Positions 3,638-52,900 of a DNA stretch of 64,000 nucleotides are shown here, piece by piece; position 1 is the first letter of the stretch, and every line of letters begins with the position of its first letter. Source of the DNA: Schmidtea nova (lineage: Eukaryota); contig CM097882.1 of assembly GCA_044892505.1 (NCBI GenBank), forward strand, positions 333,064,001-333,128,000, given 5' to 3'. Made by a program: the position numbers and the translations under genes. The notes below the pieces were generated by a model. It saw nothing but the letters and a program-made list of their open reading frames with translations. It had not been told where the DNA came from and ran no database searches.

Positions 3638-3712
3638 CAGGTCAAATCTCGTTGTAACGAAGCTCACGGGACTGAGTATATTGTTTCGTTATACTGAAAA
3701 TTTGTTATAGTG

Positions 3713-3796
<84 letters not shown>

Positions 3797-3879
3797 GGAA
3801 GTTCGTCGGGGACAAATTATAGATTTGTTATACTGGAAATTTCGTTACTTCGGTATTCGTTACATCGAGATTTGACCTG
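3638..3879. mobile_element. Tc1/mariner-pogo type MITE with internal (TA)n
   Basis: TIR CAGGTCAAATCTCG(T/A)TGTAACGAA at both ends, TA on both flanks, and a ~75-nt TA microsatellite inside. Confidence 0.9.
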
Positions 3880-6218: not shown

Positions 6219-9200
6219 GTATTTTTCTATTATTAATTGTATTAATTTATTCACATTTATAACAGGTTCCGCTCATAGTCACCCATCTCTTGTTACGCAT
6301 GCTATTCAGCCTATATTTTCCAACGAGGACACTCCGATTCATCACTCACGCTCTTCCTCTAAAAAGTCAGGTATATCCAGTTATGCTTTTCTTTAATTTA
6401 AAAAATTTCTAATTTCTAATTGATATTTAATTTTAATGCTGCAGAAATTTTTAACTGTTGGCACTTTATTAAATTTTATAAAATAATTATCCAAATTAAA
6501 TTAAATTTTTCAAGTAATATCTCTGACTCCTCATGCTGTTGGATATCAATATATAAAACTTTAATTACGTCACAGCATGACACTATACGCTTTTATTCAC
6601 TTCACTCAATTATTCGTTTTAGTTGCTATATATTAAAGCCAATCTTCTCCAGCTGCTGCTAAATATTTATTATTTTGATTTTTAATACTTTGCTCCCTAT
6701 CGGAACACTGTTATCGCAAGCTACATTTGGGCAATTGACGTGAATATCTCCTGTTTCTCTACATGCCCAACACTGCTTCAATTGATCAATGCCCACTTGA
6801 AATCTTATGTTTTGGAATCGGGTGCGGCGTGGGTTTTGTAAAAATTTCCCCTCTGCTATATTTGATATTTGTTCTTCCAATGTTCTTTCTTGAGAATTTA
6901 TTATAAGTTTCAGGATATCTTCCTTTAAAACTTTGAGAGCACTGATTGGAATTATCATTGTATTGATTATTCTCAGGCCTCCTTTTGTTCCAGTCTTGAC
7001 CTGTTGTCATTGTTGCAGCTTTTGCATAATTTTTTATCTGATTCTTTTATTCAATTGTCGTGATATTTCCTGTCTACATTTCTCGTTTTACGTTGTCCTT
7101 TTTGATTTTTCTTTGGTGCTTTCGAAAGTTTTAATATATATCATTTTTATATTTTTTAACTTATGGGTTTTCTAAAGCATTTCGTATAATCAATACCTTC
7201 AAATCTTCATTTAATTTGTCTCAAAAGGTTTTGACAAAATTTTCTATTTTTCAATATTTGAATCCGAATATCTTCTCTACACTAAAGCAGCTTTTAATCA
7301 TTTACTAAATTAGCTGGTTTAACGAATGCTGATTTCCATATGCTTTTATAAATTTCTTCTATGCTTGCTGAATAATATTTTCCTGTGACTTTAATTGCCA
7401 AAAATGACTTTATAAATATTCCACGATGTTCTTCAGCCGTCTGAGTTTTTTGGAAGTACTTTTCCATTTTCCAAAAAATTTTCTCTTTCGTCTTCAAATG
7501 TTGAAAATTTCTGACGGTTTAATAAATTTCATCATATACGTGGTCGCCATATTAAAGTCATTGATCCTATTTTATAAAATGGTGAATTCTTGGTAGCAGC
7601 ATTAATTAAATAATTAATAAATAACAAAATAAGCCTTTGGTGCAAAATTTTTATTAAGTGAAAATTTTCGATTATAAAATAATCCTTATCAATCTCTTAT
7701 TCAGAATAATTTTGCTCATAATTAACAATTTGAAGATTTTCCATTATTAAAATGACCTCTTCTAAACCATGGAGAATTAATTAATGCATTTTGATATTTT
7801 GAGCGATGTTAACAGACGTCAATCATTCACACATTAATTAATATTTACAGTTAACTAGTGATTTATTTATTTTATATACATATTTCTATAAAAATATTTG
7901 TCGGGTGACGGTTTGTTTTTAAATTAAACAGTTAATAAAATTTAAAGCCTAGTGGTACCCAGTTTCGATCTTTTGGCTCTCATCAGTGCTATGTAGGAGA
8001 CGCGAATATTACTCTTCTCGCTAGGTAAGTATAAAACAAAGCTGGAGCATCTTCACTGGATATCACATCACTTGGATTTGCCAGGCCTTACAGATAATCT
8101 GTAAACATGCAAATCACTTGAAATATTTTTAAAAAGATATTTTAAGTGATTGATATAAAAAAGCTAAGGCAGTCGGATGCGCTTTGCGAACAGTTTTTCT
8201 GTTAAACTGCTAGTGCACATAGGCGAATATAATTTTCATATGCCATGTTTGCAAGTTTATAGTTTAACTGTAAGGCCTTGCATATACAAGTGATGTGTTA
8301 TCCAATGTACCAAGAAAGTATTCAATAAAATTGTTCCAACTTTGTTTTATACTCTTCTGGCCTGAAGAGCAATTTTCGCGTCTTCTGCATAAATCGAGTC
8401 TCCGAAAGCTCAAAACTAGTCTGCTTTTGAGGTTTTGCAGTGGATATCACAAAGCTTAACCTTTAATACATTTTACAAATAAATGTATTTTTAAATTTAT
8501 CTCTCATTATTATTGATTGTTCAAAAAACATCTTTTTTTGGAATTCTAAAATGATACCGGTTTTTCTTTCAGATGCATACAAAGATAGCACAGCTTGAAT
8601 AGCGACATTTATTGTTGGAGCATTGAAAGTTTCAAACACGAGTTGAGTCATTTTTCCTCTGTTGTCATTTGGATTGATAAGAGCTTTAACAACAATGGGC
8701 GTTCTTCGTGAGCTATTATCAAATTATGAAGTCGTAATTTATCTGTAATTTCTACAGCAAACATTACATTAGGCGGATCTTGTTTATTGGCAAACACAAG
8801 AATCACTATATCTTTGATATCTTCCATTTCCAGCATTTTATGTAACTAATCTGCAACTTATTATCTCATCTGTATCCTTAAAAGCAGTCATGCATATTAC
8901 GTCTATCATACATGATTGAATTTCCTTTGTTAATAGCAAAGAATTATAAAAATATTCGAAGACGATAAAAACTTTTATTTCATTTTGAAATCCAAAATTC
9001 AACAATACTTAAAATCATTTCAAGTCTTACTGTAATATACATCAAAAAATACAAATTTGATTTAATCAAACAAAAACCTTATTAAACCTAATTATTATTA
9101 ATATCACTAATTCCCATAATGGTAAGACTATAGATCAATATTTCTTTAAACAAGTACACAATATTTCGGCACAGCCTTTATCAAGTGTGTATTGGTATAC

Positions 9201-12200
9201 ACACTTGATAAAGGCTGTGTCGGAATATTGTGTACTTGTTTAAAGAAATATTGATCTATAGTCTTACCATAATGGGAATTAGTGATATTAATATTAAAAG
9301 AAGATCAGAGGTGAAACAAAAAGATAATTATAAACCTAATTAAGTTTAAAAATTCTAAAAAAACGCAAAAATTTATCTTATTNNNNNNNNNNNNNNNNNN
9401 NNNNNNNNNNNNNNNNNNNNNNNNNNNNNNNNNNNNNNNNNNNNNNNNNNNNNNNNNNNNNNNNNNNNNNNNNNNNNNNNNNNNNNNNNNNNNNNNNNNN
9501 NNNNNNNNNNNNNNNNNNNNNNNNNNNNNNNNNNNNNNNNNNNNNNNNNNNNNNNNNNNNTCTTCAGCCGTCTGAGNNNNNNNNNNNNNNNNNNNNNNNN
9601 NNNNNNNNNNNNNNNNNNNNNNNNNNNNNNNNNNNNNNNNNNNNNNNNNNNNNNNNNNNNNNNNNNNNNNNNNNNNNNNNNNNNNNNNNNNNNNNNNNNN
9701 NNNNNNNNNNNNNNNNNNNNNNNNNNNNNNNNNNNNNNNNNNNNNNNNNNNNNNNNNNNNNNNNNNNNNNNNNNNNNNNNNNNNNNNNNNNNNNNNNNNN
9801 NNNNNNNNNNNNNNNNNNNNNNNNNNNNNNNNNNNNNNNNNNNNNNNNNNNNNNNNNNNNNNNNNNNNNNNNNNNNNNNNNNNNNNNNNNNNNNNNNNNN
9901 NNNNNNNNNNNNNNNNNNNNNNNNNNNNNNNNNNNNNNNNNNNNNNNNNNNNNNNNNATTTGAATACAGTAAAACATGTCGATTTTTAATTTCTGTATCA
10001 TTATAAATAACAATAATAGTTCTCTTTTTCACCACGGGGCCTTATTCACCATGAAGCTTTTAATATTATTTTTTTAGAATTATTGAAATTTAAATCAAAA
10101 TCTTTCAGATAAAAAAATTGAGAACGAAATCGTTAGTGAAAAATCAGTTCTGTCTTTGTCGAAATCAAATAACTTAGATCTCGTTAATAGGCCTTTGACG
10201 GAACATGACAAAATTGACATGAAAGATTTGTTATGTTACTTGAGTTTACTGGAATCCGGAAAACCGGAAGATAAATTGGAGTTTATGTTCCGCTTATATG
10301 ACACCGATGGAAACGGAGTTCTGGATAAATCTGTGAGAATTTATTTATGTTCAAGTTTAAAATTTTAATATAGTTTTGTGGATTAAATTATTCTTGTAAT
10401 GAAGTTATATTAACCAAAAATTAAATATACCTATTTGATTTAATTGTTAAATCTGTTGATCCATTCATTCTCATATTGGATGAATTGATTTTGAATTGGT
10501 CTTTCTCATTTAGATAATTCCACAAGACAACTCGTTAAATATTTTCTCTACAGCAGCGTTTCTCAAAGTATGCTCCGCGGAGCCCTGGGGATCCGTGAGC
10601 TATCTAAAAGGGCTCCGCGGATCCCATAATCACATTTGAAATAAAAATTATAAATTTAAATCACCTAAAAATTAAATTATAATTTAAAAAAAATTAACTT
10701 ATAATTATTACTAATTCATATATGAAATTAATTTGTTGTTTTGAAATATTCAGATTTACTTAATTTGAACTAAAAAAATATGTAACTGTTAACAGTTAAC
10801 TCAATATAGTGTGCTACGCCTACTAGAGAACTAACAGTACAGTGAGTAAGTTATGCTATTGGTCAATTATAGTTATTACGATTTGAGTATTTGTTACAAT
10901 ACAAAATCATTAAAACTGCAACAGTTGTCTTAAGTATACGTGTGGCATTATATTTTAATTTTTATTAAAAATCACTGAATTTTAGCAAAAAAATTATTTC
11001 AAGTGAAGTTGAAGAATATTAAGGTAGTAGCTATCTTTTATTTATTTCTTTAAATTACTTATATATATTAGCCGAGTTTTATTTTATTAATTGCTATAAA
11101 TTACACTACTTGTATATACGTTATAAAGGATGGATCGTTGGCTAATTAAAGGTACGTCGAAAGACACAAGATCTCAGCAATCACCTGAACCGTCTACATC
11201 CAAAAATATCAAAATAGTGGCAACTTGCATAGATCTAGAAAAAGAGGAATTTGCTCGCAATGCGAGTGAATTACGTGAGCCTGCCATTAAGAAACGGAGA
11301 TATGATGAAAGCTATTTATCTCTTGGTTTTATAGATGCTAATAATGTGCCTCAATGTTTCTTATGCAGCAAGCTTTTTACAAATAGTGCTATGGTGCCCG
11401 CTAAAATGCGTCGTCATTTGGAAACCGTACATCCAGAGTTTAAACATAAGAAAGTTGATTATTTTATTCGTATGCGTGATGAGCTCTTAAACCGCCAACG
11501 CCTAATTGTTTCAACTTTTAAAACTAGAAATGAGAAGGTCACTGAAGCATCTTACATTGTTAGTTATCGTATTGCACTAGCAGGCGAAGCTCATACAATA
11601 GATGAGACATTGATCAAGCCTTGTGCAGTCGATATAGCTAAATGTATATTTGATGAAAAGTTGGCAAAAGAAATTACAGATGTGCCGCTATCCAATGACA
11701 CGGTAGCTCGTCGAATTAAAGATTTAGCTGCCAACGTGAAGTCTCAATTGATATTTCGTCTGAAGTGTTGTAATTTTTCTCTACAAATGGACGAAAGCAC
11801 AGATGTAGCTGGACTTGCAGTCTTGCTTGTTTTTGTCCGATATCAGCACATAAATTTACTTGAAGAGGATCTTCTTTTGTGTGAACCATTGCCAAATAAC
11901 ACAACTGGTGCCGAAATATTTAATATCGTGGATAATTTTTTTAAGACTCATGGTTTAGATTGGAAAAATTGTGTTGCTATCTGCACTGATGGTGCAAAGG
12001 CAATGGTAGGAAAAACTGCTGGCACTGTCGCTAAGATCAAGAATTTATCACCAAACTGCAACAATAGCCATTGCATTCTTCACCGCCAAGCACTTGCAGT
12101 AACAAAAATGCCAATGTTATTGAAAAATGTCCTTGACGAGTCTATAAAGATCATAAATTTCATTAAGTCGCGACCCCTGCAATCACGGCTTTTCAAGATT

Positions 12201-14696
12201 CTTTGCGAAGATATGGGCAGCATACATAAAGCTTTATTGCTCCATACCGAAGTACGGTGGTTGTCTCGAGGGAAAGTCCTTGTTCGACTATTCGAGCTCC
12301 GTTCCGAATTGGGCACTTTTTTCATGGAAAACAGAATGGATTTACAGGAAAAACTGACAGATAAACTGTGGCTGCTTCGACTTGGATACCTCGCCGATAT
12401 TTTTTCAAAGATAAACAAAGTGAATATGTCACTTCAAGGAAAGCAAGTAACAGTGTTCACAGCCAATGATAAAATTGAAGCTTTTAAAAAAAAATGGAGT
12501 TTTGGATCATTTGCATTCGCTCTCGTCAGCTAGATAGCTTCACAATACTTAAAGAATTCTTCGATGAAATTAATGGCGACATTGAAGAAAGCGACTACTT
12601 TATGTTGTGTGATGAAATTCGTCAACATTTGGAAGACATGCTAAGTTCAGTAAAACAGTATTTTCCAGATGAGCAGAATGAAAAGCTTAAAAATTACACA
12701 TGGATTAGAAACCCATTCATAGTTCATAAAAAGCCAAAAGAATTTACAGTTAAGGAGTACGAAGTCTTCATTGACATGATTTCAGATTCATCATTACTAC
12801 CCATATTTGAAAAAGTATCTTTGCCAGAATTTTGGTGCACTTTAAGACAAGAATATGCAGATTTATCAATGAAAGCTGTTAAAATACTTCTTCCTTTCGC
12901 TACCACTTATCTGTGCGAGTCTGGATTTTCTGCATATGCTGCAACAAAAACAAAACACCGCAACAGACTTGATGCAGAAGCTGACATGAGAATTCAACTC
13001 TCAGCTATAAAGCCAGACATAAAAGAATTATGTGAAAATAGGAAACAAGTCCACTCTTCGCACTAGATATTAGTGCGATGAGTGGACTTGTTTCCTATTT
13101 TATTATGTTTTTAATAATTTATGTATATTTTTGTTGCAAATAAATTTGTTGAAGTACAAATATATTCATTAATTCTTTTTATTTATGAATTTGTAAATAT
13201 ATATATTATAAAAAAATAAACTTCACTTTGGAGTTAGGCATCATCGATTGGCATATACACACAATTAGTCATTAGTGAACCACTGGGGTTCCGTAAAAAA
13301 ATTTATGGCTTTGGAGGGCTCCGCAGCTCAAAAAGTTTGAGAACCGCTGCTCTACAGCAAGCTCTGATGTAATATTCAATAATAATTTGCTAATTGGTGA
13401 CGTCATATACTTCTTTTAGAAAGAAGAATTCTTTATTATTTTTTACATTTTTTGTAGCTTTAGATATAATAAGTCTTTTAAAATAGTTTGAGATATTTTA
13501 ACGCTAAATTGGAAAAGCATGACGAAACAAAATCAGATGAAACAAAATATTCTTACACGGTAGTGATGGAAGGCAATGGACTTAGAAGATGCCTGGAGAA
13601 GCACTTGACTCTAAAAATTTAAAACAGACTATCAAATATGATAAGTTCATTATGTCACTGCACATTTTCAATATCATTAGAATTGGTGATTTTCACATTA
13701 ATGATACTCTTACATCTGTTAAGTTTTTTTGGGTCCTTTCAGGCCACATGGTACCATCTGCAAGACACTTAATTGGGAAGAACTTCATATTAAAACAGGA
13801 TAACGACATAAAGCTTACTCCTAAAAATACCAAAGAATGGTTCAAAAGTAAAAAATAGTATTTACATGGCCAGCTCAAAGTTCAGACCTGAATCCAATTG
13901 AAAATGGTTAAGCCGTAAAAAGAGATATACGAAGAAGGTATTCGAAATATTAAAGATTTACCATGCATTATTGAAAAATAGGGAATTTCTTTACTTATGA
14001 TTATTGAAATTACCTAGTTGGATCAATATACAAAAGGATTGATGATGTCATACGTTTTTAAGGATTGTGGACTAAATATTGAATTGGATTATTTTATAAT
14101 GTAAAAAGTTAAAATAAATTTATATTTAATAAAATGGTCCGATACTTTTTCTTGATAAAAATTATAATTTTGTTTATAAAGTTATCATATGCAGAAATGT
14201 TATGTAAATAATATTATATAAAACAATTTCTTTTTGTTCTCTTTATAAATATGTGATGATTGAAATATTAAAACAGCATTACTTCAAAAAATTTTTAAAT
14301 CTAAATGGGTGGATAATTTTTCTTTACCTGTTAAATTTATTTACATTTACATTTACATCATTTACATTTGTGATAAAGATTAACTTCTAATAGTAAACCC
14401 ATTAGCATTGCGTCATATAAAAAGTGATAAAGTAAATAAAGGTAAATAAAAGAATACCACATACTAGACAACACAAACATTTCTATGTATTCAAACAATG
14501 AATTGCATATACCTTCCTTCACATATTCATCTTTATTTTGATTATGCTTGCTTTTAAATAATCACTTTTTTCTAAGGAATTTCCTCAAAATATTTTAATA
14601 TATAATCTTTTTACATTGTATTATTAAAATTGGCTTGTTATCTGTCTCCATATCTTGTAATCGACTTTTTGCCCGCTTCCGATTAACCTTTATAAC

Positions 14697-14781
<85 letters not shown>

Positions 14782-17700
14782 TGATGACAGCGCAATATTC
14801 TGTGTATAACCCCAAAATTAGCCCCCCGTTGATGGTGATACGGTCCACTGCGAAATATAAAATTATGTGAATATCGTACATTGATTTTTTGTAATAGAAG
14901 GCTATTGATTTTTTTATCTGCTATAATAATTTTCATTTAATAATAATTTTAATTTAAATAATTTTAATTAAAAATCTATGTAACAGAAATCTATAATACC
15001 ATGTTCTTCAAATTTTTTGAATGGTACTTGTTTAAGAATTCATTTACAAAAATAAAACTTCTAACAAATAATAGTACATATGTCATATTTTTACCTTAAT
15101 ATTACACTTTAAAAATTATTTAAAATGTTTTGAATAACATTTATCTTAACGAGTTATTTTTCATAGGAAGTTGAATGCATAATTAGCCAAATGATGAATG
15201 TTGCTGGTTATCTAAATTGGGATACGGAAGAATTATTGCCGGTATTTTATTTTAATATAATTAAAATGAATTATATTATACGAATTATACGAATATCATT
15301 TTGCTCTCTTTTCTTAAATTTTATTTGAAGTTCTATAGCTTAAAACTTCAAGCACAGAGTCTGCTTTAATTTTATAGGGGCTTTAGACTATTCCCTTAAT
15401 GAGGGACCTGTCGATTCATTATCGCTACGACTACAGAAATATGAACAATTTTTAATTGTCTCATGCTTTACTCTATCCCATGCCTTATTCACAAAATTAT
15501 TGCATCCAATAAATTTAAGTTTATTTTTCCACCCGTTAATTGTGAATTTTGGCCTAGTCAGGTTATAATTTCCTTGATCATCAGTTCAAGGTAAAATAAT
15601 CTTTAATTATTCCGTGTTCGAGAGGTTGAGGTAAAATGGTTGTATTTGTTGATAAATACATGATCTCAATATTTTTAGGTCTTCGATCGGTAAATGATAG
15701 GGTGCATTATCAATAATGAAAACTTTATGCTTATTTTCTTTTTAGAATTTTTTTTTCCAAACATCTTACATATTTTTCTGATTTCGATGTAATCATCCAT
15801 ACTTTCTTATTTGACGAATTTATTTTGAAAACTCGAGGTTTTGAGTATTTTCCAATAACAGGAATGGGTAGGTAGTCACAAGTGCTCTACTTAATTTACC
15901 ACCAATAGATGATTTACTTTTAGTTGAGAGGTTTTTATTTGGTTATTTATATTTACTCTAATCAGTGTAAATTTCTGGAGAAACAAATACACTTTCACCG
16001 ACTTTATCACGGAATGTTATTGAGTTTCTTTTTTACAGCTAAAAAATTTTAGTAATTTTTGATTGATGCTGTTGGTTATTTTTTTAAACTAGAACTTGAC
16101 CTAAATTCTGTTAGTTCTTTGATAACTTTTGTGTCTTAATGTGAAATCTTTATCTTTCGAAATACATAAATCTTAAATTAATGATCTTTATGATTGTTAT
16201 TTATTCACATCTTTGTAGATTTTTATTTCTAAAATTAACAAATGTTAATAATATTTAAGATTCTTCAGCAAATGATGAATGAAATTGATTATGACAATGA
16301 CGGAGAAGTAACGTTAGAGGAATGGAAAAGAGGTGGAATGACGAATATTCCATTACTTGTATTACTCGGGCTGGATACTGTAAGTATAAAAATAATTTTA
16401 ACTTAAATTTAAATAATATAAGTATGCTATCAAATTTTGTAATAATAATTGAATTTTGTTTTGTTTTTTTTGCATTTGGATTAATTATAAAATAATTTGT
16501 AGGAAGAATGTATTATTAAACAATTAATGTTGTTTTAATATTATGAAAATGTGGTAAAATAGAATTTGAAAAAACGTTGTGTCTTACAAGCTATCCGGGC
16601 AATGGAAATCAACAAGATCATAATTGAAAATGTTGGAAAATTCGATGGCAAAAATACAGATGTGGAAGAATGGTTCGACAAACTCGAAATTATTTTGGAA
16701 GCCAAGAATGTGAAAAATGTCATGAATGTAATGCCATTTTTACTTGAAGGGCAATCTTATGCAGTTTTCAAACAGTTAAAGAAAAGCAATACGACAATGG
16801 AGTTTTGTATGCTGAAGAAGGAATTATTGAAAACCTTCGGTATGAGCGAGCAAGAAGCTTTTACGAAACTTTTACAGAAAAAGTTATTAATGGGTGATAA
16901 CATGGATGTCCATGTAAATGAATTAAGGTCACTGTTGGAATGTTCAGGTGATCTATTAACCCGATTTTTTGTAAATAGCTTACCAAGTGATTTGGCAAAT
17001 CAACTAAAGATGTCAACAATGAATGAGTTAGTCGCTTAAGCAAAGAAAATCGCAAGTCATCAATTTTATGACAATGAAACGGTTGCAGTAGTAGTACCAA
17101 GATCAGATAGTGGAAGACAAGCCAATCGAAAATGCTATATATGCAATAGTGCTAATCATGTGGTAAGATACTGTCCAGAAAGACGTAACATCAGATGTGC
17201 AAAATGCGGTATTATGGGACATATTTCAAGGTTTTGCAAGTCGGGAAAAGATCAAGGAGCTACACACAATGTGGAGTCGGGTGTGGCCCCAAGAATTGTG
17301 AATATGTGAGACTCCTAAAAGTAAATGGTAATGTAAAAGCATGTTTAGTTGATTCGGGCAGCACTACCACTATAGTAAAAGGAAATCCACGAAAATCGAT
17401 GACTGCGGTAGCGATGCTTGATGGTTCAATCATATACGCTGAGCGAAGTACAGTTGATATATTGGTTGGAGATACGTTATTTAATATTGATTGTTTAATA
17501 TACCCGAAACTGGTATCCAATTATGATGTAATTTTAGGGGTGAATGCTATTAATAGGTTTGGTGGAGTTCGATTGAATAAAGAAGCTATATTCGGTTGTG
17601 AAGAAGCACCTTGTCACGTAGCGTGCTCTAGTAGTAGCATGTCAGAAATATTGAAGGAAAATTTCTCTGTGAAATTTGAAAACTAGAAATGGATTGTCAA

Positions 17701-20700
17701 ATGGAATTGGAAGTCAGAGCCGCCGAAATTTCTACCTAATAGAAATTTAAACTTTTATGATAATTGTAGTAAGGATCAGGAGACGATGCGTATCTTGAAC
17801 TCTTGGATATCTAACAGCTATTTAGTTGATTATGACGAGAAAACAATGGGTAAACCGATCGGATCAGTACCTATTTATGGTATAATTCAGTTAAATAAAG
17901 CGAAAGTGCGTCCAGTATTTGACTTTAGGAGTATCAATAAATATATTGATGTATATAGTGGGAATGCAGATATCTGTTCTGAAAAATTACGATCATGGAG
18001 ATGTTTAAGTAAAGAATTTGCAATGTTAGATTTATCTGATGCATATATGCAAATACACGTGGATAAAAGTATGTGGCGATATCAATCTTGTATGGTTATC
18101 GGGAAGAGATATGCGCTTACGAGAATGGAATTTGGATTGAATATCGCGCCAACGATAATGACAGAGATTGTGAATAAAGTATTGAACAACAATGAATCAA
18201 TCAAGAGTAGCACAAGTTCATACATAGACGATATATTCGTAGATGAATCTAAAGTCAAAGCAAGTAAAGTAAGTGCAGAAATGCGTAAATTTGGTTTGAT
18301 ATGTAAAGAAGAAGAAAAGGTCAAGGATACTCTCAGTATAAGAGTATTAGGTATTGATGTATTTCGAAAGAATAATGAACTACACTGGAAAAGATCGAAC
18401 GATATTCGAATGAATGAATTAAATGAAGGGCTTTCAAGAAGAGAGCTGTATTCGTTATGTGGCCAGTTAGTTGGAGTTTATCCTGTGTCTGGGTGGTTGC
18501 GGCCAGCTTGCTCATATATCAAGAGGCTATATAGTGGAAATTGGGATGATTCAATAGAAAATCATATCGTTGACAAAGTAAAATGGTTATTAGAAAGAGT
18601 GAATGAAAGAGATCCATCGTCAGGTATTTGGAGTGTTACCAGCAATCAGACAGGCATAATTTGCTGCGATGCAAGTTTGATCGACATTGGAATTGTATTA
18701 GAAATGGAAGGTTCAGTGGTTGAAGATGCATGTTGGTTGCGAAAACCTGATGATTCAAGACACATTAATTTGGTCGAATTAAAAGCGATTGTGAAGGGTA
18801 TTAATTTATGTATTAAATGGAATTTAAAGTACATCAAAATTAAATCCGATAGTAAATCAGTCGTATGTTGGGTTAACAGCATATTATCAAGCGACAGAAA
18901 AATACATACAAAATCAAATTCAGAGTTGTTAATACGACGAAGGCTGGAGCTTTTAAAAGATTTAGCGACTGAGTATGAACTTAAAATGGACATTGAGTTT
19001 GTATCTACAGAAAATAACAAGGCTGATGTATTAACGAGAGTACCAGCCAACTGGATGATTATTAAAAAAGAAGTCGCAGCTCTAGGCAATCAAAAAAGCT
19101 CAAAAGATGTGTTATTAGAGATTCACAAGAATTGCCACGTAGGGAAAAATAATATGCGATTCTTAGCATCGGAAGCGGGGCTACTGAATATGGATAAAGA
19201 GATCTCAGAAATAATTGCAAGTTGTAATCAATGCCTATCAATTGACCAAGCCCAGGAACGTGGGGAAAAGGTGACCTAAGCTGTGATGAAAATTGGTGCC
19301 GTTTAGCAATTGATGTAGCTAAATTTGCTAAAGATAAATATTTGACAATTATTGATTGTGGACCATCGAGATATGCAATCTGGAAGAAAATTTAGTATGA
19401 AAATTAATGCTTTAAATGAAGTGAAAAATTAATGCTTTATGGAAATTAATGAAAATTAATGAATTTTATGAAAATTAATGCATTTATGAATTTTAATGAA
19501 TTTTATGAAAATTAATGCTTTAAATGAAGTGCTATATGAAAGAGGAGCTCCAAGTGAAATATTATTAGATAATTACTTATCTTTTAGATCTAGAAAATTT
19601 CAAGAATTAGCAGATAAATGGAATGTTGAGTTGGTATTTAGAACAGTGAACCGTCCAGGGGGAAACGGGATCATTGAACGCAGCCATCGGACAATCAAAT
19701 CGCTAGCAGCTAGGTCCTCAGGATCAATCGCAGAAGCTGTGTACTGGTTCAACAATACACCAAACAACAATAATATTTGTCCATCTAAAGCTATATTTAG
19801 ATATAATCCAAAGCTGAATTTGCTAAGTTACAATAAAAAAGAGATATTAATCGAAGCAAAATATTCTGCTGGTGACCCGGTATGGATAAAACCGAATATG
19901 AACCAAAAATGCACAGAAAGATAGAAAGATGGTCTTATCATCAAACCATTATCAAATACAAAATTTTTAGTCAGATGTAATGGATATGATATGCCACGAC
20001 ACGTGGGTGATATTAGAAAAGGTGTTGTTAAAGATTCAGATGAATCTGGTGGGGATGTAGGAAGAATGTAATATTAAACAATTAATGTTGTTTTAATATT
20101 ATGAAAATGTGGTAAAATAGAATTTGAAAAAACGTTGTGTCTTACATAATTATTTTTAGAATATCAGTTAATATACATCATTTCTAAATTGAATCTATTA
20201 TAAGCAGACACTTGATGCGTTACATTCACGCAATATTTTTGAAGTTTCATACAAAATAGTCTGAAAAACCTGTAGTCATTTATAAATTTGATCGTTATAA
20301 TCAGGGGCTCAGATTATCTCCCACAGAGCTCTCTATAATTAAATAGAAATCAACTACAAGAACGATAAATTAACGAGAAAAATAAAAGAAAAAAATACAA
20401 TTTAACCATGATGATATAAAGTATGAACAAAGTTATTTAATGTTTATAAGATTAGTTCGTGAAAGTAGGAAGTTCTTGACGAATATGTGCAGATTTTTTT
20501 GCTTTAACATTTTTCTACACATTTTTCTACACATTTTAATATTTTTTTTACAATTTTTCTTCTAACATATACATTTTGACAAGTAAAAATCTCTTACTAA
20601 TTTAAAAAGATTGATAATTTATTAAAAAAATGGAGACCGAAATCCGAACAAACCTAATAATTTTTTTAATTCAATAAACCAGGGCTTCTTAAACTTTTGG

Positions 20701-20976: not shown

Positions 20977-23900
20977 CTTTTATAATTATATGGGGTCGCA
21001 AAAAAATTCACAATTATAAATGGGGTCGTGAATGGAAAAAGTCTAAGAAGCCCTGCAATATACCGAAGGATTAAAAAAAAGAATATTTAATATATTTGCA
21101 TCCGCAGATACAAAATTACGTAGAAAAAAACGCAAATCTTTAAGTAATTTAATTATTCTCTCGGAAGCTCACCGAAACGTAAATTTTCTTTGTCTATTTC
21201 AGAAACAGTTGGTAGATCTACCTTAGCTCCAGAAAGATTTACTCTTTTTTTCGAATCCAATAGACCTCAATTTTCCACTTCACACGTTAAGCATTTGCTG
21301 GCTTTTTATATTATAACTGATTAATCCATCATCAACGTAAATCCTGCTGTTTACGTGTAATATTATTATTAGTAATTTATTAATTCTCTCGGAAGCTCAC
21401 CGAAACGTAAATTTTCTTTGTCTATTTCAGAAACAGTTGGTAGATCTACCTTAGCTCCAGAAAGATTTACTCTTTTTTTCGAATCCAATAGACCTCAATT
21501 TTCCACTTCACACGTTAAGCATTTGCTGGCTTTTTATATTATAACTGATTAATCCATCATCAACGTAAATCCTGCTGTTTACGTGTAATATGTTAATTGT
21601 ATTATTATAATACCTCCACAATTGACTGTTATTGCATTGCTCGGAATATTTATTACCCACAACTATTTTAATTGTCGATCCCTTACTCAGCATCACTTCC
21701 CTGATTGGACTGCTATTCACAAGGCCAGTTTTAATTTCCGGTCTCTTAGTATCGAGTGCTATAGCAGTTGGACGGAAATACGGTTTGAATGTGTCAACTG
21801 CTGCTCACACTAATTTAATTGTCTCCTCGTGATATTCATAAAGTATCATCGCTGGAATGCAAAGGAGCAACAGTCATTCCAGCAGAAATTATTTTGTGAA
21901 GAACTGTAACCAATTTGTTAGCTTGTATAATCATACAAATGATTCCAGAATTTCTTATGATACATGGTTCGTCGTTGAAATTCAACTTGGACACATGTTA
22001 CGGAAATTTCTCAATTAATAATGATAATATTTATAGCATCTTTATCGATCCATCTTGAGTATTAATGACTCTTGAAAGAACATTTGGATTTAATAGATCA
22101 TGAATTTTAACTCAAAAAACAAAGATAAAATTGCTGCCAAAATTCTTTAACAAATGTACCGTCATTTTTTAATAGTATCTGTGGTTTACTTACCAGTTAT
22201 GTATAATTATTTGTTTTTATAATTGTGTGTGTCGGTATTGACAGTTTGGATTCCCCCCTTCCAATTATTTGTAGGCAGTATGATTTTTATTATAAATATA
22301 AATTGGAATAAATAATAAATTGTAATTTGTAATGATAATTATAATAATAGTGGTAATTATGATTATTAAATTATGAATTTGAATTTGGCTTGCTATAGCA
22401 AATTGCTATAGTAAGCCAAATTTCAAATTAAAAAAAATTGATAAAATTAAAAGGATCGAAATTATTTATGAAAGTTGATTGTGAAGAAAATATTTATACC
22501 CAAAAGAAAATCAACTAAATTAGATTCAGAATACAGAGAAATTAAAAGAAAATAACAGAAGAGAAGATTCAATTAAAGAGAAAGTAAATCCTGCTGAAAA
22601 TAAAACTATAGGACTCTTAGAATAAAGTTGAAAACTAAACAACAGAGAAATTAAAAGAAAATAACTGCAGAGAAGATTCAGTTAAAGAGAGAAAATCCTG
22701 CTAAAAATAAAACTAGAAATCTTGGAATAAAGTAAATTTTAGTGATTTCTTTTATTAATACATTTTTGGAAGTTTATAATTGTGTTATTAGTTTAATTTT
22801 TGATTTTTTTGTACTTTAAAGCACGATTACATAACAAGCACCCGAGTGTCTCCACGCTGTTTGTGGAAGACTCTCGCGGGCTCTACAATTTCCTGACATA
22901 CACACAAAATAAATAAAACAATTTTTTAACAAACATTAACATTCAAAGCATTAAATAACAGTATCAAATTGAGAAATCTAAAATTTAAAATAAACTCTCG
23001 CATTGTGATGTCATTTTGATTCTGAAGGTATTGTAAATAATTTTGCTTAAATCTTTTATAAACTCTTTAAAATACATTTTATCCATTTGCTGGCAAATTT
23101 TTACTGTGAAAACCATGAGACAAATGATTATTTTGAAATTGTGTATTATCGGAATTGAGGAATAACATTAACTTGAAATAATAATTTAATATCAATCCAT
23201 TATTTATCTTTTAGCGGTGTTATCAACTCACAATAAGTCATAATAATCAACCAGCCAATCATATTTTTTGAATTCCGATTTTGATCAATTAAAATATATT
23301 GAAAATATCTTTGATTTTCTGACATGTGATGGATAATGAAACTATTCCCTCAGTTTAATGCGATTAACTTTCTGAACAATTTCAAAAATTTAGTTTCAAA
23401 GACATTGAAATTATAATTTGTTGGTTCAAGATATCTCGATCCATCTATCTTCATTTTAATTAATTTTGAAATTTTGAACAATTTTTTAAATAATAAATAA
23501 TTAAATCCATCAAAAACTTTTAATATCAATATCAATAATTCCCATTATAGTAAGACTAGAGATCAAAATTTCTTTAAACAAGTACTCAATATTTCGGCAC
23601 AGCCTTTATCAATACACACTTGATAAAGGCTGTGCCGAAATATTGTGTACTTGTTTAAAGAAATATTGATCTATAGTCTTACCATTTTAAGAATTATTGA
23701 TATTAATATCGAAAAAAAATCAAAGGTGAAACAAAAATATAATTATGATATTTAAACAATAGTTTAGTTTTAATTCTCCAAAATTTTAATTTAAAATTTA
23801 AAAACCAAAATTTATTTAAAATTTACTTTTTTAAACCTAATTCTTACTTATTTTATATATTAAAAAGAAACCAAGAAAAGAAACTTCTAAAAACATAATT

Positions 23901-26900
23901 AATCACTTTTCATTCCAGGATAAACCATGTTTAAATATTAAGATGTATGTCGCTTACACAGGTTTTACAACACAAATTTGGGAAAATGAAATTTATATTA
24001 GAATAACCAAACCAAAAATACTACATGCTCCACTGGTTGTGATTAGAGTCGTTTTTGTAGTTATCCCATGGTCTGATTGCATATTATAAATAATTATTTA
24101 TGCATGTAGCAAGCAGTATATAAACTTTAGCTTATAGCAAATTGAATTTGGAAATGTTGTAACTTCAAAAAGTACATGATTTAGTTTATTTCTTTGTGTT
24201 ATATCTATAGATGATTAAATATTAAATTAAATATTAAATTACCACAATTCGAAAATCTATTTATATACAAATAATATTCAAACAATTTTTATAATTCATA
24301 ATATTAAAACGAATTTTAATATTATTAATTCCCATATAACATTCCCCCGTCTTATTCGGCTCTCAACTCGAAATCGTCGTATAATCGCGACTTCACATTT
24401 CTATTGTGTCTTTTCGGGTATCTTCCTGTGGTCTCTTTATTCTCTCCCGTCAACGTTGCTTCGTTAACCTCTTCCAATCTCTCCGATTCCTTTGTTCTTG
24501 ACCATATACTTGTTCCCCAAATGTCCGTCTCTATCTTTGCTATTTCTGATCTTTCTGGGATAATCTTAATCTGGTTATAATTACGCTGTATTTTCTTCCC
24601 ATCAGCCTCTTAATTTAAAAGTCCAATCAATTACTTTCTCCAGTATTTCATATGGGCCGCAATATTTCTCCCCAAATCCTTGTTTCTGAACTACTTTTAC
24701 TAATGCCGAATCTCCTATTTTGACGTCTGTATTCCATCTATTTCGATTGTAAATCTTTTCGTTATATACTCTCGCTTTATCAGTTTCCTTTTTTACTTTC
24801 TCTAATATGTTCGTTAACTCTGTTCTCAGTTTTCTCATGAATTCTACGTAGTCATGTGGTCTTATTATGTCGCTTGTTTCTTCTCTTACTTTTGGTGTTC
24901 TGCCGAACATTAATTCTATCGGTTTATATTCAGTAATTTTATGGACTGTGTTCCTTAATCCATATCCTACCGTGTGTACTGTTGAATCCTATTCCTTCGT
25001 CTTTCTGTCGAACATGGTGGCTGCCATCATACTTTTTGATGTTTGGAACATTCTTTCGATTAAGCCGTCAGATTGTGGGTAGTACGGTGATGTACAGATT
25101 TTCTTTGTTCCTATCAGACTGCACAAACCCTTAAACATATTTGACTCAAAATTCTTTCCTTGATCTGAGTGAATCCTTTCTGGTATACCGAATTTTGTGA
25201 TTCATTCTTCCCATATTGCTCTAGCCACTGTTTCGGTCGTAATTTCTGGGAGTAGTATTAGACATGGGTATTTTGTGAAGTAGTCAATTAATCCCAGAAT
25301 GTATCTATTTCCTTTTCTTGTCATTGGTAAAGGTCACGTAATGTGTATTCCCAAAATTTCTAAAGGTTTACTGCTTATAAAACTCTGTAGTGGTTCTCTT
25401 ACTCTTCCGTTTATATACTTGTGTTGACAGGCTATACATCGGTTTCCTCTATCTATAACGTTCTCGTTGATATTTGGCCAATAGTATCTTTCTTTGGCTG
25501 CTCTCGTGGTTCTTTCAATGCCGACATGTCCCAATTCCCGATGTAACTCGTCAATATATCTATTTCTTTCTTCTTCTGGTAGTATTTTCCTATGTCCTTC
25601 TGCTTTTTTAATCATAAGATTTCCTTCGCTGACATACATAAGCTCCGCTTTTCTCCATAGTTCTAAGTGTTTCCGGTTTTGTTCTTTTCTTCCTTGCTGT
25701 ATCCAATTGATTATTTGTCTAACTTCTGAATCCGTCTTCGTATTTATTTGACATATAATTCTTTCTGACTTGTTCTCTTCTATAGAATTGTTTTCTTCCT
25801 CGTAAACTTTTACATTTCGTTTCTTTCTTGGGTCCGCGTGTTTCAGTCGGCATTGTTCGCATGGTGTAATTCTTAACAATGCGTCCGCATTGCATTGGTC
25901 TTTCCCTTTTCTAAATTCCACTTTCATGTCATATATTTCTAGTTCTGCTTTCCATACACAATATTGAGAGGTGTTTGGACTACTCCAATCTAATAACCAT
26001 TTAAGTGCCGGATGATCTGTTCTTACTGTGAACTTTTTACCTACTAAATAATACTTGTATTTTAATACAAATGTGTAAATTGCCAAAGGTTTCTTGCGTG
26101 TGATAGAGTATTTCCTCTGCGTTTTCGTCATAGTTTTCGACCCATACGCAATAACTCTATCCTTCTCATCTTGGATTTGAGACAGGACGGCCCCTATTGA
26201 ATCGTTAGACGCGTCTCGTGTCTAAAACGTAGTATCCATCTGTAGTTGGTAATGCTAATATTGGCGGTGATAGTAAAGCCTGTCTTAATCTCTCGAACGA
26301 TCCTTGTCTTTCCTCCGTTCATTTAAATTTGTTTTCTGTTCGAAGCATTTCGTTTAAAGGTTCTGTCGTCTTAGCGTAGCCTTTAATGAAGTTTCTGTAA
26401 TATCCCGTCATACCTAGAAATGTCCTTAGCTCTTTCTGACACATTGGCTTCTTATATTCTCTTATCGCTTTGGTTTTGTCTGGGTCCGTCTGTACTCCTT
26501 CGTTTATAATGTGTTCCAAATATCTTACCTCGTTTTTTAGTAAGTGGCATTTCTCCGGTGATATATTTAGTCCCGCTTCTCTCATCTTCTGTAGTACTCT
26601 ATCTAATCTTTTGTTGTGTTCTTCAATTGTTTTCACGAATACCAGAATATCGTCTAAATATATCACACAGTTAGTCCAGTTCTCTCCTCTCAAGACCTCG
26701 TTCATTATTCTTTGAAATGTTGCTGATGCGGCACATAATCTGAATGGCATTCTTGTGAACTCGTATTGGCCGAATCTCGTGCTGAATGCTGTTTTCCTTA
26801 TATTCTCTTCTGCGATTGGAATTTGATAGTATCCACTGGACATATCTAATGTGGAAAAGAATTTTGTGTTTCCGATCGTATCAAAGACTTCGTTTGCTGA

Positions 26901-46900: not shown

Positions 46901-49900
46901 TCGTTAAGTAAAACTATCTTTTTACTAATTTTATGTTGATCTGTAGATTGTGACTGTTCAATATGTCGAGGACCGCGTGCAATTCGTCTGTGTGGCTGTC
47001 TCGATCAGTTGACACATCGTCGAGATATGCGAAAGTGTGACGGATGTCACGAAGAATTGTGTCCATGAAGCGTTGTAAGGACTGAGCTGTATTTTTGAGG
47101 CCGAAAGGCATGAACATGTATTCAAAATTTCCAAATGGCGTAGTTACTGCTGTTTGGGGGACGTTGTCGATACGGATGGGAAATTGATGGTACGCTTTTG
47201 AGAGGTCTATAGTTGAGAACATGGTAGATTGTGAAAAGCGTGTTATTAAGTCTTTTATGAGTGGCGTTGGGTATGCGTCGTGGTTCTGTTACTTGGTTGA
47301 GTTGTCGATAATCTCCACAGAGTCTGAAAGATCCGTCTTTCTTTGTGACTAAGTGTATTGGCGGAGTCCATGGTGAAGATGAACGACATATAATGCCTGC
47401 GTTTTCTAGACTAACTAATTCAGATTTGACTGCATCGAGTTTGGTGGAAGAGAGAAATCTGGCTCGATTTTGTTGTGGTATGCATGGTAATGTGTGAATA
47501 TAGTAAAGTTGATAGGGTTGTGGGTGGTCTGGTAGCGGATTTAGTGATAAAGTTTAGGTATTTGATTGAAATTAATTTGATCATGTCGTTCATTGTGTCT
47601 GGACTGACTGTATGATCGATTTGCAACGTGTGCTCAGCACATGTCGTCGTAATATCCTGTTGAATAGAGTTGAGTTGTGGCACTGAAGATGTCTGAGTTG
47701 AAACTGTTACTATGTTCGGCAGTGAATTTGTCGCTGTATAGGTGCCGTCCTATTTTATAGTGAACAGACGACGGTTTTTGCAATCTACCATGATGGATTC
47801 TTTGCAGAAAAATTCGGAGCCTAATATTGGCTGGATCGTCTCTGCTATGTGGAAAGTTTGAGTGAAAGTTGAGTCTACTGTTGGTATTGTGAATGAAAGT
47901 TTTTTTGTTCCCAAAAATTGAATTGGTGTGCTATTGGCAGCCAATAGTGAACGGAGATTTGAAGTCTGGCCTAAAAGTCGTTGGAAGTATTGAAAATGAT
48001 GAGCCGGAATCGATGAGAAAATGAATTGATGAGCTAGAATCAAAAGTTTCTTCAACAGTGAAGATGTTGTTGATCGCAAGGACGCCGCCTGAAAATCCAG
48101 GGTTGACAAACAGCGAAGCTGGTTTTTATTGGGAGAATCGGGATAATTATTGTCGTGTTATTCTTTTGATAAACGGCTTACGAAAGTGCAACCAGGAAGA
48201 CATTTTTGTGCGTGGAAACTGAAGATGTTGTGGTAGATACAAATGGGGATGAACCTCAGAGTTGAAGGAAAATTTGGCCATGAACATCCGATATGATATG
48301 TTCTGGCTGCAGATGAAAATATCTTGTAAAAAAAATAAGTCAGAGAAGGAAAGGATTTTGATTTGTCGCTTCTTTGGTAATATGAATTTTGTTGGGAGGA
48401 ATTATGTATTTTCTATTTGTAAAGATTTGTTTGAATACTCAGAAATTTGAGTAAAATAGATTTTTAAAATAAAGCGTGATTTTCTTGTCTTTATAGAAAC
48501 AACAAGCTATCGCGGCAATAATGGACAAGATGATCCCAATTTTCAGAGGAGAAGGCGATGTTCAACAGTGGATTCAAAAAGTGAAGCTAGTGGCAAAAAT
48601 TCAGAAAATCGCGGATTTAGAATCAATTATTCCATTATACCTAGATGGGCCAGCTTTCGCTGTATATCAGCACTTGAGTGCGGAAGACAAGGGCAACGCA
48701 TTGAAGATCGAACATGCTCTAATCGATGTCTATTCCATAGATATGTTCCAAGCATATGACCGATTCCGTGAACGAAAGTGGTGCAATGAGCCAGTCGATG
48801 TATATTTGAATGATCTCAAAAACTTAGCATCATTGGCCAAGATAGATAATGAGATTTTAATTAAAACGCATTCATTATGGGTTTGCCAACAGCAACGTCA
48901 CAACAGTTACGATCCTATGCCAAAATTCAGCAGATGTCTCTTGTTGATGTTTTGAAGCAGTCCCGAGTTTTAGTAAACTGCAACACTATGGAACTATGTT
49001 CGGCTGTTGTGGGAAAACAAGACAAGCATAATAAATGTTTATATTGCGGAAAGAATGGCCATATAGAAGAACGTTGCTTTAAGAAACAAGGAAGGAAGTG
49101 TTGGCGGTGTGAAGAAGAGGGACACATTGCAAAGGAGTGCACCAAAAATTTAGAGTCGGGAAACGGAAAAGGAGTAACGCATGCGCCAGCGTCTACTCCA
49201 GCACGAATATAATGGCGCTTCAGTTTATTTCTGTCATGATCAATGGGGAGTCTGTGAAAGCATTGATCGACTCGGGATGTTCCAAATCAGTCGTGTAAGC
49301 CAGAATTGCGAAGAAACGATTTATACGGAATGGGAGTATCATGACTGCGGATGGATCACTAGTCGAGTGTATGCGTGATGTAAAAGTTCAACTGATTGTT
49401 GGTGGTAAATTATTGAGCGTTGATTGTGTCTCGTTGTTGAATCTACCACTAAATGTTGACATGATTTTAGGAATGGACGTAATAGGGATGCTTGGTGGTC
49501 TTAAAATTGACAAGACTGGTGTATCTTTTCCAGGTATTGCAGATGTATCGTGCGTGGCTGAGATGTTGGATCAGTCAAATGAGAATGTGCGAATTGAAGA
49601 TGGTGATTTTTCAGCAGTATTCAGTGATAGCAAGTGGACCGTAAAGTGGAAATGGAAAGCAGAACCAGTTGTACTATTGAATAGAATTTCAAATTACAAA
49701 ATCGATCCAGGGCTACAGATCAAGTTTGATACGGAGGTTGAACGGTGGATTCAAGAAGGATGGCTAATTCCAACGAAAGACGTCGCGTATGGAAAAATCC
49801 CGTTATTAGCAGTAGAGCAAATAAACAAAGGAAAAGTTCGCCCGGTAATGGATTTTCGGGAACTAAATAAATATGTTAGTAGTCATACTGGACAAAGTGA

Positions 49901-52900
49901 CGTATGTGGCGAATCATTAAGGCGATGGCGAATGATGGGCGAACAGGTTACATTAATTGATCTTAAAAATGCTTATCTTCAGATCCATGTTGAAAAAGAC
50001 CTATGGGAGCATCAAAGGGTTAGTTTCAAAGGGAACGGATACTTTCTCACGAGACTCGGTTTTGGTTTAAATGTGGCTCCAAAAATAATGTCAACAATAG
50101 TACGAAAGGTATTACGTTTAAGAGAAGACATCAGGAAAGCAACAGACAGTTATATTGACGACATTATTGTCGACCAGTCGAGAATAAACGTCAATGAAGT
50201 AATAAGCCATTTGGCAACATACGGGCTAATTACAAAGCCACCTGAAGAGTTTGATAATGCAAGAGTGCTCGGTCTCCAGCTTCAAACGAGTATTAACGGT
50301 CGTACGTGGCACCGTGGAAACATTTTGCCAGACAACGAGTTTACAGACATGTCAAGAAGGGAGTTATTTTCACTCTGCGGACAACTCGTTGGGCACTATC
50401 CAGTTGCTGGATGGTTGAGAGTAGCGAGTAGCTATATAAAACGACACAGTGCTGGTAGTAAGTGGGATGACTCAATTGGAAAGATCGCGTTAAGAATGGT
50501 CAACGAAATGATGTATCGTGTGAAAGAAAGTGATCCGGTGTCTGGTGAGTGACACGTAAACAAAGAAGGATCTACAATTGTCTGGTGCGATTCAAGTAAT
50601 CTAGCATTAAAAGTGGTGTTAGAAATATCAGGTAAAATCGTCGAAGATGCATTATGGATGAGGAAGAAAAACGACTTTGCTCATATAAACCTTGCAGAGC
50701 TGGATTCGGTGATAAAGGGAATTAACTTAGCTATCAGCTGGGAAAGAAGCAACTTAGTTGTAATAACAGATTCCGATACCGTTAGGAGTTGGATAGATTC
50801 AGTTTTAACGGATACTTCTAGAATCTGAACTCATGGAATTGCTGAAATGCTAGTACGAAGACGTCTGCAGATTATCTGTGAATTACGAAAGAGTTATGAC
50901 TTAACGATCTCGGTTGAGTTTGTTCCGACAGATAAAAACAAAGCAGATGTACTCACAAGAGTCAGTAACAAATGGCTGACTTGGGTTAAATCGTGTGATG
51001 AACCAACTGTAAGCACCGTTGCTGTTATGAGCGAAGTGGTACGAGAAAGTCACAGACAGCATCATTTTGGAGCCAAGAAGACATTGTATTTTGCAAAGCA
51101 ACTTTGTCCAGACGTTACGCTTGAGGATGTTAAGGTAATAATCGGTGAATGTGTAGAGTGTCAATCTATCGATCCAGCGCCTGTTAAATGGGAGCATGGA
51201 GAGTTGAGCGTTAAGGAGACTTGGAAGAGACTGGCTATAGATGTTACATACTATCTAAGTAAGCTTTATTTGACTGTGATTGATTGTGGACCGAGTCGTT
51301 TCACTCTGTGGAGGGAAATAAGAAGTGAAGATGCGGAGACCATTACACGGAACCTTGAACAGATCTTCAGAGAACGAGGTCCCCCTGATGAACTGGTGAT
51401 CGACAATGCGACTTCATTTCGGTCAACACAAATGAAAGCATTGTGCTACAAATGGGGTGTAAAATGTGTGTTTCGATGTGCTTATCGGCCTTCCGGAAAC
51501 GGTATAATAGAACGAAACCATCGTACTATTAAACGTATGGCAGCCAGAACCAACAAGGGAGTATTGGACATGGTATACTGGTACAACCTAGCACCTAATG
51601 ACAAATGCGGAACGCCTCCATCCTCATCCGTGTTTTCATATTAGTGGAAAGGAGTTGGCGCACGTAATACAGAAGAGAAGACACAGTATACTTCGTTCCA
51701 AGTTGGCGATGCAGTTTACGTAAAACCACCAAATGCGAAATGCACCTCAACATGGGGTGAGGGGAGTGTAACGAAGGTAAATTCATCGACCAACTTCGAA
51801 ATCAACGGGATACCGCGCCACTATTCTGACATACGACCGGCTGTCAACGAAATGTCAGTGGATAACAACAACGATGAAGTACTAACAGGCGCTGATAATC
51901 CAACACTCGACTTATTGCGCCGTGATGAACGTAGAGGCAGGACCAGAAGACCTCGATATCTTGATGATTTTGAAACAAGTTTTAACGAGAACGAAGACGA
52001 AAATCACGGGGAGATGTAAAGATTTGTTTGAATACGCAGAAATTTGAGTAAAATAGATTTTTAAAATAAAGCGTGATTTTCTTGTCTTTATAGAAACAAC
52101 ACTAATATATGTATTTTCTACCGCTGATCATTTCGTCTCTAAATTAAGAACAAGGCTTGATGACAATTCCATTAATGCATTATGTTTTTTGAAATCCTAT
52201 TTCTTGAACAATTCGTAAGATTACTGAAAATTTTGATTAATTAAAGTACAAGTATCCTTTATTTATATCGAAATTATGCAAAAATCCTTGTTTAAAATGT
52301 TTTTTGTAAGTATTTTAAATTCGCACATATAGTTTTTTTGTAAAATACACAATTGTTAGAATCAAGAAGCTTAATCATTCCAAATAATTTATGTTTTTCG
52401 TTTTTTATGACTTTTAAAATAACTTCTAGTATAAATTTTATATTTTTATGTAATTTAAACGTACAAACCCATTTTTGATGTTTTAGTCATATTTTATCAA
52501 CCTTTTTTTAACTAATAGCGATTATAATATAAAGATAAAAATTCTTTAATAAACGTTTGACGGTAAATAAGATAATATAAAATAAACAGTAATTTATTAT
52601 CTAATATAACTTATTTAGAATTTTCTAGAAACTCCGGGATTTTTAATTTGAGAACCGCAAGATTACGGGATTGTAAAAAGTCGTCGGGATTGAAATCACT
52701 AGCCATGATGATTTTTTGAAAGTTAAAGTGTTATTTTTGATTATTTAAAGCAAAAAAACCAATTAATATAATATAACATTAATAATTTAATTATTAAATT
52801 AATGTCATTATTAAATTGAAAAGTATGAGGCACTACAGTCATCACATTATTTTTGCCATCAAAAAATTTTAACATGCTTTATTTCAGATGATTAATATTT

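Follow-up and report, generated by a model that had tools for sequence, protein, structure and literature searches.

We describe here a long terminal repeat (LTR) retrotransposon of 3.6 kb, element B, at 16498-20146 on the + strand of a 64,000-nt stretch of Schmidtea nova DNA (assembly GCA_044892505.1, contig CM097882.1, positions 333,064,001 to 333,128,000), which we call the window. The 12 bases directly behind the 5' LTR of this compact retrotransposon and its relatives (~3.6-4.5 kb) are likely to be the minus-strand primer-binding site, and the primer that they would bind is the 5'-terminal 12 nt of a host tRNA. As judged by base complementarity, the 12-mer would pair with the tRNA 5' end rather than with the 3' CCA end, the partner being of Lys(UUU) type in element B and of Phe(GAA) type, Lys(CUU) type or another GCC....UAGCU end in other members. 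The choice and preparation of the primer is a defining replication step of LTR retroelements. On balance, and with somewhat more reserve, we hypothesize that in an animal-wide lineage of compact LTR elements reverse transcription is primed by the 5'-terminal 12 nt of host tRNA, freed by a cut in the D stem. Such a mode would be distinct from 3'-end priming, half-tRNA priming and self-priming, and the stop for plus-strand strong-stop DNA would be set by the primer's own 5' end instead of by a modified base.

Element B is bounded by a 5-bp target-site duplication, TAATT, at 16493..16497, with identical bases right behind the 3' LTR at 20147..20151. Its two LTRs are 91 nt long with TG..CA ends (16498..16588 and 20056..20146) and form a direct repeat with one mismatch. 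The last bases of the 5' LTR are CTTACA, ending at 16588, and the leader that follows measures 13 nt: the putative primer-binding site AGCTATCCGGGC at 16589..16600 and an A at 16601, after which the gag start codon ATG occupies 16602-16604. A preliminary description of this DNA had placed the LTR end, the 12-mer and the start codon at these positions and had called the leader free of TGG; we find each of them there, and TGG is absent from the 13 nt. At the other end of the element a polypurine-tract-like run, GGTGGGGA (20048..20055), abuts the 3' LTR. Relatives carry G-rich runs at the equivalent spot, their purine runs ending ...GGGGGA/GGGGAG.

The coding region between the LTRs (gag-pol, 16602..20071, + strand, a single part comprising gag, aspartic protease, reverse transcriptase (RT), an RNase H and an integrase) is broken. 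It is split over four open reading frame (ORF) pieces; compared with an intact relative of 1201 aa its frame changes once, and the pol frame contains 11 stop codons. Its pieces match the Pfam families RVT_1, DUF7047, RVT_3 and Integrase_H2C2 and, weakly, gag-asp_proteas, and, as in the relative L002, the reading frame overlaps the start of the 3' LTR. The TG..CA direct repeats, the target duplication, the domains and GGTGGGGA identify element B as an LTR retrotransposon (Ortervirales-type). The surrounding DNA is AT-rich, with a GC content of ~29%.

The reverse complement of AGCTATCCGGGC is identical to nt 1-12 of tRNA-Lys(UUU) as two papers print that tRNA, which bears out the exact 12/12 complement claimed in the preliminary description. 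The same description had held that the 12-mer is no copy of the 3' acceptor strand. That strand reads TTCGGGC in the printed human tRNA, whereas element B has TCCGGGC; this difference rules out a same-sense copy of the tRNA 3' strand and identifies the 12-mer of the element as the complement of the tRNA 5' strand. A canonical site for the 3' CCA end, starting with TGG, is likewise ruled out, the leader having only 13 nt without TGG and the 12-mer being unlike the complement of the printed tRNA-Lys(UUU) 3' end. On both strands of the window AGCTANNNNGGC occurs twice (16589 and 48505) compared to 0.46 occurrences expected, and both sites lie directly behind an LTR end and shortly ahead of a gag ATG. 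The name Lys(UUU) for the primer rests on vertebrate sequences, and 12 bases are insufficient to fix the amino-acid identity because related 12-mers start Phe and Thr tRNAs in virus and prokaryote contigs.

Element B is not alone in carrying this arrangement. The 497-aa ORF that encodes its RT and RNase H has more than 150 relatives at 35-56% identity, found in Amphibalanus amphitrite, Hydra vulgaris, Trichuris suis, Nymphon, Watersipora, Argonauta and Portunus and on many metagenome contigs of 3.5-4.7 kb. We fetched 80 metagenome loci using a protein pattern that is blind to the leader sequence. In an unfiltered listing anchored at the gag start, nearly every locus that contains the junction reads as an LTR end in ACA, then AGCTA, four variable bases, GGC, an unconserved stretch and the gag ATG. 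The arrangement ACA | AGCTA-N4-GGC is found in 45/45 LTR/leader junctions of distinct context, a set gathered with a filter on the motif. Conservation ceases from column +12, and the spacer between the 12-mer and the gag ATG ranges from 0 to 28 nt in the 45 junctions; the motif is also present in two loci with longer leaders (L031, ~250 nt, and L069, ~100 nt). When the strict pattern ACA+AGCTA-N4-GGC is searched on both strands of the 87 family loci, 50 have it on the coding strand and none on the other, the expected number being 0.09.

The same position is occupied in copies from named genomes, whose LTR pairs are 97-100% identical. The barnacle Amphibalanus amphitrite (L199, LTR of 114 nt) and Hydra vulgaris (L201, LTR of ~192 nt) both have the 12-mer AGCTATTTCGGC, while the whipworm Trichuris suis (L200, LTR of 222 nt, 5-bp duplication GACCC) has AGCTATCGAGGC. 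Relatives with both LTR pairs and 5-bp target duplications also place the 12-mer right behind the CA of the LTR end. The preliminary description had allowed that other copies might show a normal TGG site or unconserved sequence here; instead the motif is kept at the equivalent position, and a TGG site was seen in none of the copies and distant relatives inspected. The lineage covers cnidarians, nematodes and crustaceans and probably extends to chelicerates, molluscs and bryozoans, and ACA|AGCTA-N4-GGC is a simple search marker for it.

The constant parts of the 12-mer complement nt 8-12 (UAGCU) and nt 1-3 (GCC) of the tRNA, so that the four variable bases correspond to nt 4-7 of the acceptor stem. 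The preliminary description had looked to covariation with different tRNA 5' ends, and the variable core does shift in discrete classes, three of which complement documented tRNA 5' ends exactly, namely those of Phe-GAA, Lys-UUU and Lys-CUU. The class AGCTATTTCGGC, with 11 junctions, complements the start of a human Phe(GAA) tRNA primer (PMC10505166) and equals the 3'-terminal bases of a Drosophila 'tRNA Phe GAA 5' probe' (PMC7038984). The Lys(UUU) class AGCTATCCGGGC has three junctions including the window's own, and AGCTAGCCGGGC, with one junction, has its Lys(CUU) partner in tRNA 5' halves printed in papers and equals the 3'-terminal bases of the Triops probe directed at the tRNA-Lys(CUU) 5' half (PMC4501094). 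Other abundant classes have the cores TCTAGGC (10 junctions), TCGCGGC (9) and TCACGGC (5). In contigs of IMG/VR, Phe and Thr tRNA genes predicted by ARAGORN start with GCCGCGATAGCT, GCCTAGATAGCT and GCCGTGATAGCT, which are the complements of these three further classes in a prokaryote or virus context that has little bearing on animal hosts. The further classes are thus predicted to be genuine tRNA 5' ends somewhere, though not necessarily in animal hosts.

A second member of the lineage, element C, lies in the same window at 48418-52101 (+ strand) and belongs to another class. Its 5' LTR of 87 nt with TG..CA ends (48418..48504) forms a direct repeat with the 3' LTR, also 87 nt, at 52015..52101, with one mismatch. 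Directly behind the 5' LTR stands the putative primer-binding site AGCTATCGCGGC (48505..48516), of a class shared by 9-12 relatives, and the gag ATG follows at 48521. Its gag-pol (48521..52014, one part) is matched by Pfam RVT_1, DUF7047 and rve and is broken as well, with two frame changes and four stop codons within the pieces aligned to the intact relative. Two 12-mer classes within one window mean that one genome holds at least two families or classes. In a rough RT tree some classes cluster and others recur in several places, which is the pattern expected from occasional switching among similar tRNAs.

We propose the following course of events. The acceptor stem and the D stem of the tRNA would open and nt 1-12 would anneal to the site, giving a 12-bp duplex whose computed stability of -17 to -25 kcal/mol is adequate. 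A cut between nt 12 and nt 13 would then create a 3'-OH exactly opposite the first base behind the LTR. The element's own RNase H might cut the RNA:RNA duplex in the manner described for Tf1, the closest precedent for this step, or a host nuclease might produce the short 5' fragment beforehand. Reverse transcriptase would extend the 12-nt primer through the U5 (unique 5') and R (repeat) regions, and plus-strand strong-stop synthesis would later copy the primer and run off at tRNA nt 1. Such a run-off would produce a site of constant 12-nt length with a sharp 3' border at the base that pairs with nt 1. Since the site would be copied anew from the tRNA in each cycle, it would stay identical among elements with 35-56% protein identity and change only by jumps between similar tRNAs.

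Several points weigh against this reading. Priming itself and a cut behind nt 12 are deduced from sequence, and elements B and C, being defective, are both silent on activity. Because the 45 junctions were gathered by a motif filter, their fixed columns are partly invariant by construction, a problem that the unfiltered gag-anchored listing and the strand control reduce without removing. ARAGORN finds zero tRNA genes in the window, in the loci L001-L060 and in the three named-genome loci; the match therefore stands on vertebrate and arthropod tRNAs printed in papers and on prokaryote and virus tRNAs. For the cores TCTAGGC, TCGCGGC and TCACGGC a full-text literature search found no documented eukaryotic tRNA partner.

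It is conceivable that the motif binds the tRNA 5' end, or some other factor, in a role other than priming, such as selective packaging of tRNA or RNA, genome dimerisation or control of gag translation, while the minus strand starts in another way. We regard this as unlikely, while giving it some weight: the gag start codon is very near the motif, priming is proposed here from sequence, and a protein or structural requirement could explain why AGCTA and GGC are invariant across classes. However, zero spacer separates the motif from the LTR end, the defining position of a primer site, while the distance to the ATG varies from 0 to ~250 nt, and the short leaders offer no alternative primer site. 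An exact length of 12 nt ending at tRNA nt 1 is moreover what primer copying predicts. Quite unlikely, in our estimate, is a partner other than the mature tRNA that has an equal 5' sequence, be it the transcript of a tRNA-derived short interspersed nuclear element (SINE), a pre-tRNA or a pre-existing pool of 5' tRNA fragments with a biogenesis of its own. Although 12 bases cannot separate a tRNA from its derivatives, and the same 12-mers start tRNAs of differing amino-acid identity in other collections, the classes agree with the best-conserved 5' ends of cytoplasmic tRNAs across human, zebrafish, Drosophila and Triops. The presence of the lineage in cnidarians, nematodes and arthropods makes a lineage-specific SINE unlikely, and no such small RNA was seen in the window by ARAGORN and Rfam scans. 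Within 16300-20300 Rfam reports no RNA family, even at E <= 1.

Self-priming of the Tf1 type, in which the element's own transcript supplies its 5' end to pair with the site and this end is then cut into the primer, would be suggested by the primer length of 12 nt (11 nt in Tf1) and by the position adjoining the LTR, both of which recall Tf1 and Tj1. We consider it very improbable, since the LTRs lack a complement of the 12-mer, as the preliminary description had noted for element B, and the window holds no match at <=2 mismatches save the one at 48505. That description had named pairing with the element's own 5' transcript end as a way in which its reading could fail. The longest exact complement within the 200 nt upstream is <=6 nt in 40/40 loci, and mismatched controls give the same. 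Taken singly, a 12/12 match in one element might have arisen by coincidence, or the 12-mer might be a functionless scrap captured from a tRNA gene, and this explanation appears to us hardly credible at all in view of a position conserved in 45 distinct junctions at 35-56% RT identity while the flanks diverge, a strand-specific motif (50 loci vs 0) and discrete classes that match several tRNAs.

The intact 1201-aa relative has the domain order Asp_protease_2, RVT_1, DUF7047, RNase_H, Integrase_H2C2 and rve, and the top ranks of a profile search against PDB are retroviral integrases together with retroviral, foamy-virus and Ty3 RTs. In an AlphaFold2 (AF2) model of the 497-aa ORF (17786-19279; predicted local distance difference test, pLDDT, 82.6), one RNase H fold comes straight after the helices at 218-274, and the fold matches to this model cover an RT plus one RNase H. 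The model suggests that DUF7047 is a helical, thumb-like stretch linking the RT palm to a single RNase H fold. The RNase H itself scores as the cellular or RVT_3 type (RVT_3 / RNase_H PF00075), unlike the usual type of LTR retrotransposons.

Three placements were considered on this basis and rejected. For BEL/Pao (Belpaoviridae), Pfam finds no Peptidase_A17 in the window pieces or in the intact relative. For Ty3/gypsy (Metaviridae), Pfam gives RVT_3 / RNase_H (PF00075) and not RT_RNaseH, a domain that is seen in the neighbouring element at 24246-29530. Membership in Odin, prompted by the retrovirus-like protein matches, is disfavoured by the model, in which no RNase H-like tether is predicted between RT and RNase H.

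Further observations concern the relatives. At column +12, the first base past the 12-mer, an A stands in 26/45 junctions, and later columns are mixed; this could reflect composition or be the trace of an untemplated addition at run-off. Many metagenome contigs are circularly permuted (pol, LTR, 12-mer, gag, pol) or are dimers, joined head to tail, that repeat every ~4.0 kb with a single LTR between units (L030, L041, L043, L052, L055, L069, L071, L074 and L077; L032 and L036). Such contigs could have been produced in assembly, the elements being multicopy, or could be genuine tandem or circular forms. In the Trichuris suis copy L200, an assembly gap (a run of N) occupies the expected spot of the polypurine tract just upstream of the 3' LTR. 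The contig of the closest relative, L001, also carries a Tc1/mariner-type transposase gene on the opposite strand (HTH_Tnp_Tc3_2 and DDE_3, 2830-3870), which suggests a repeat-rich eukaryotic host.

Other features surround the two elements in the window. An exon-like stretch at 16255-16385 encodes an EF-hand-type peptide and ends in GT ~110 nt before element B, which apparently sits inside a host-gene intron. About 1 kb downstream of the element, at 21143-21598, a 228-nt unit is tandemly duplicated with 98% identity. A direct repeat of 300 nt with 98% identity joins 49-348 to 51307-51606, so that the window opens with a stretch also present in the integrase region of element C, a fragment of a further copy at the window edge. 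On the minus strand, a Ty3/gypsy-type element at 24246-29530 (RVT_1, RT_RNaseH and Integrase_H2C2) is bounded by 144-nt repeats of 99% identity with no obvious TG start or CA end. ORFs resembling hAT / ZBED5-like transposases lie at 11130-13066, with a weak match to the hAT dimerisation domain and 90% identity to a Logan assembly protein, and a dispersed repeat of 135 nt with 90% identity is found at 9197-9331 and 23612-23746.

A full-text literature search, with older subscription literature outside its reach, yielded no published primer site complementary to tRNA nt 1-12. A paper on a 5' fragment in Arabidopsis deals with a fragment that has the same sense as a canonical site and not with priming. 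A recent survey of metazoans matched only the 3' 12 nt of tRNAs (PMC13524379). Annotation pipelines and surveys limited to tRNA 3' ends would score the present lineage as having no primer site, so that it may be missed or misclassified. To our knowledge, the known solutions to the primer problem are few, namely the tRNA 3' end, a cleaved half of the initiator tRNA and self-priming. If our reading is true, the use of a tRNA 5' end would be a new solution in which tRNA priming is joined to a dependence on cleavage like that of Tf1. Very short 5' tRNA fragments, normally lost to the size cuts of small-RNA work, would also gain a natural role.

Canonical sites, as found in retroviruses, Ty3/gypsy and BEL/Pao, start with TGG and are complementary to the final 8-18 nt of a tRNA. 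The present lineage shares with these elements the order of LTR, primer site, gag, protease-RT-RNase H-integrase, polypurine tract and LTR, as well as the use of a host tRNA, and differs in a site that has no TGG and would pair with the tRNA 5' end. In copia and Ty5-type elements the site pairs with an internal stretch of tRNA-iMet ending in the anticodon stem-loop, and the primer is about half a tRNA; priming of this type by a cleaved initiator-tRNA fragment was reportedly described by Kikuchi et al. 1986 and Ke et al. 1999. As in those elements, a part of the host tRNA other than the 3' CCA end would be used, an internal cut would make the 3'-OH and the primer would retain the tRNA 5' end. 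Compared by description, the difference is that here only nt 1-12 would serve, from Lys- or Phe-type tRNAs rather than iMet, and that the cut would fall in the D stem. In BEL/Pao the site is described as 18 nt long, with the 3' end of tRNA-Arg or tRNA-Gly as its partner (PMC8742986).

The Odin retrotransposons of sea anemones are reported to be sisters of retroviruses and are defined by a dual RNase H, a tether plus a new RNase H (PMC9040795), in a paper that is silent on primer sites (PMC9040795). Like Odin, the present elements are LTR elements of invertebrates that lack env, and their proteins match retroviral integrases and RTs best in PDB searches. They are set apart from Odin, by description, by the single RNase H fold that our model places directly behind DUF7047. 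Tf1 primes with the first 11 nt of its own mRNA, the complement of which lies in the LTR, and the RNase H of the element cuts between nt 11 and nt 12 (PMC7175516, PMC4600332). The present lineage resembles Tf1, Tf2 and Tj1 of Schizosaccharomyces in the shortness of its putative primer (12 nt, against 11 nt in Tf1) and in a site adjoining the 5' LTR; the 3'-OH of its primer would likewise have to come from an endonucleolytic cut where an RNA:RNA duplex ends. The two differ in the origin of the primer: the Tf1 LTR holds the primer complement, whereas the LTRs of the present lineage hold none and the partner would be the 5' end of a host tRNA.

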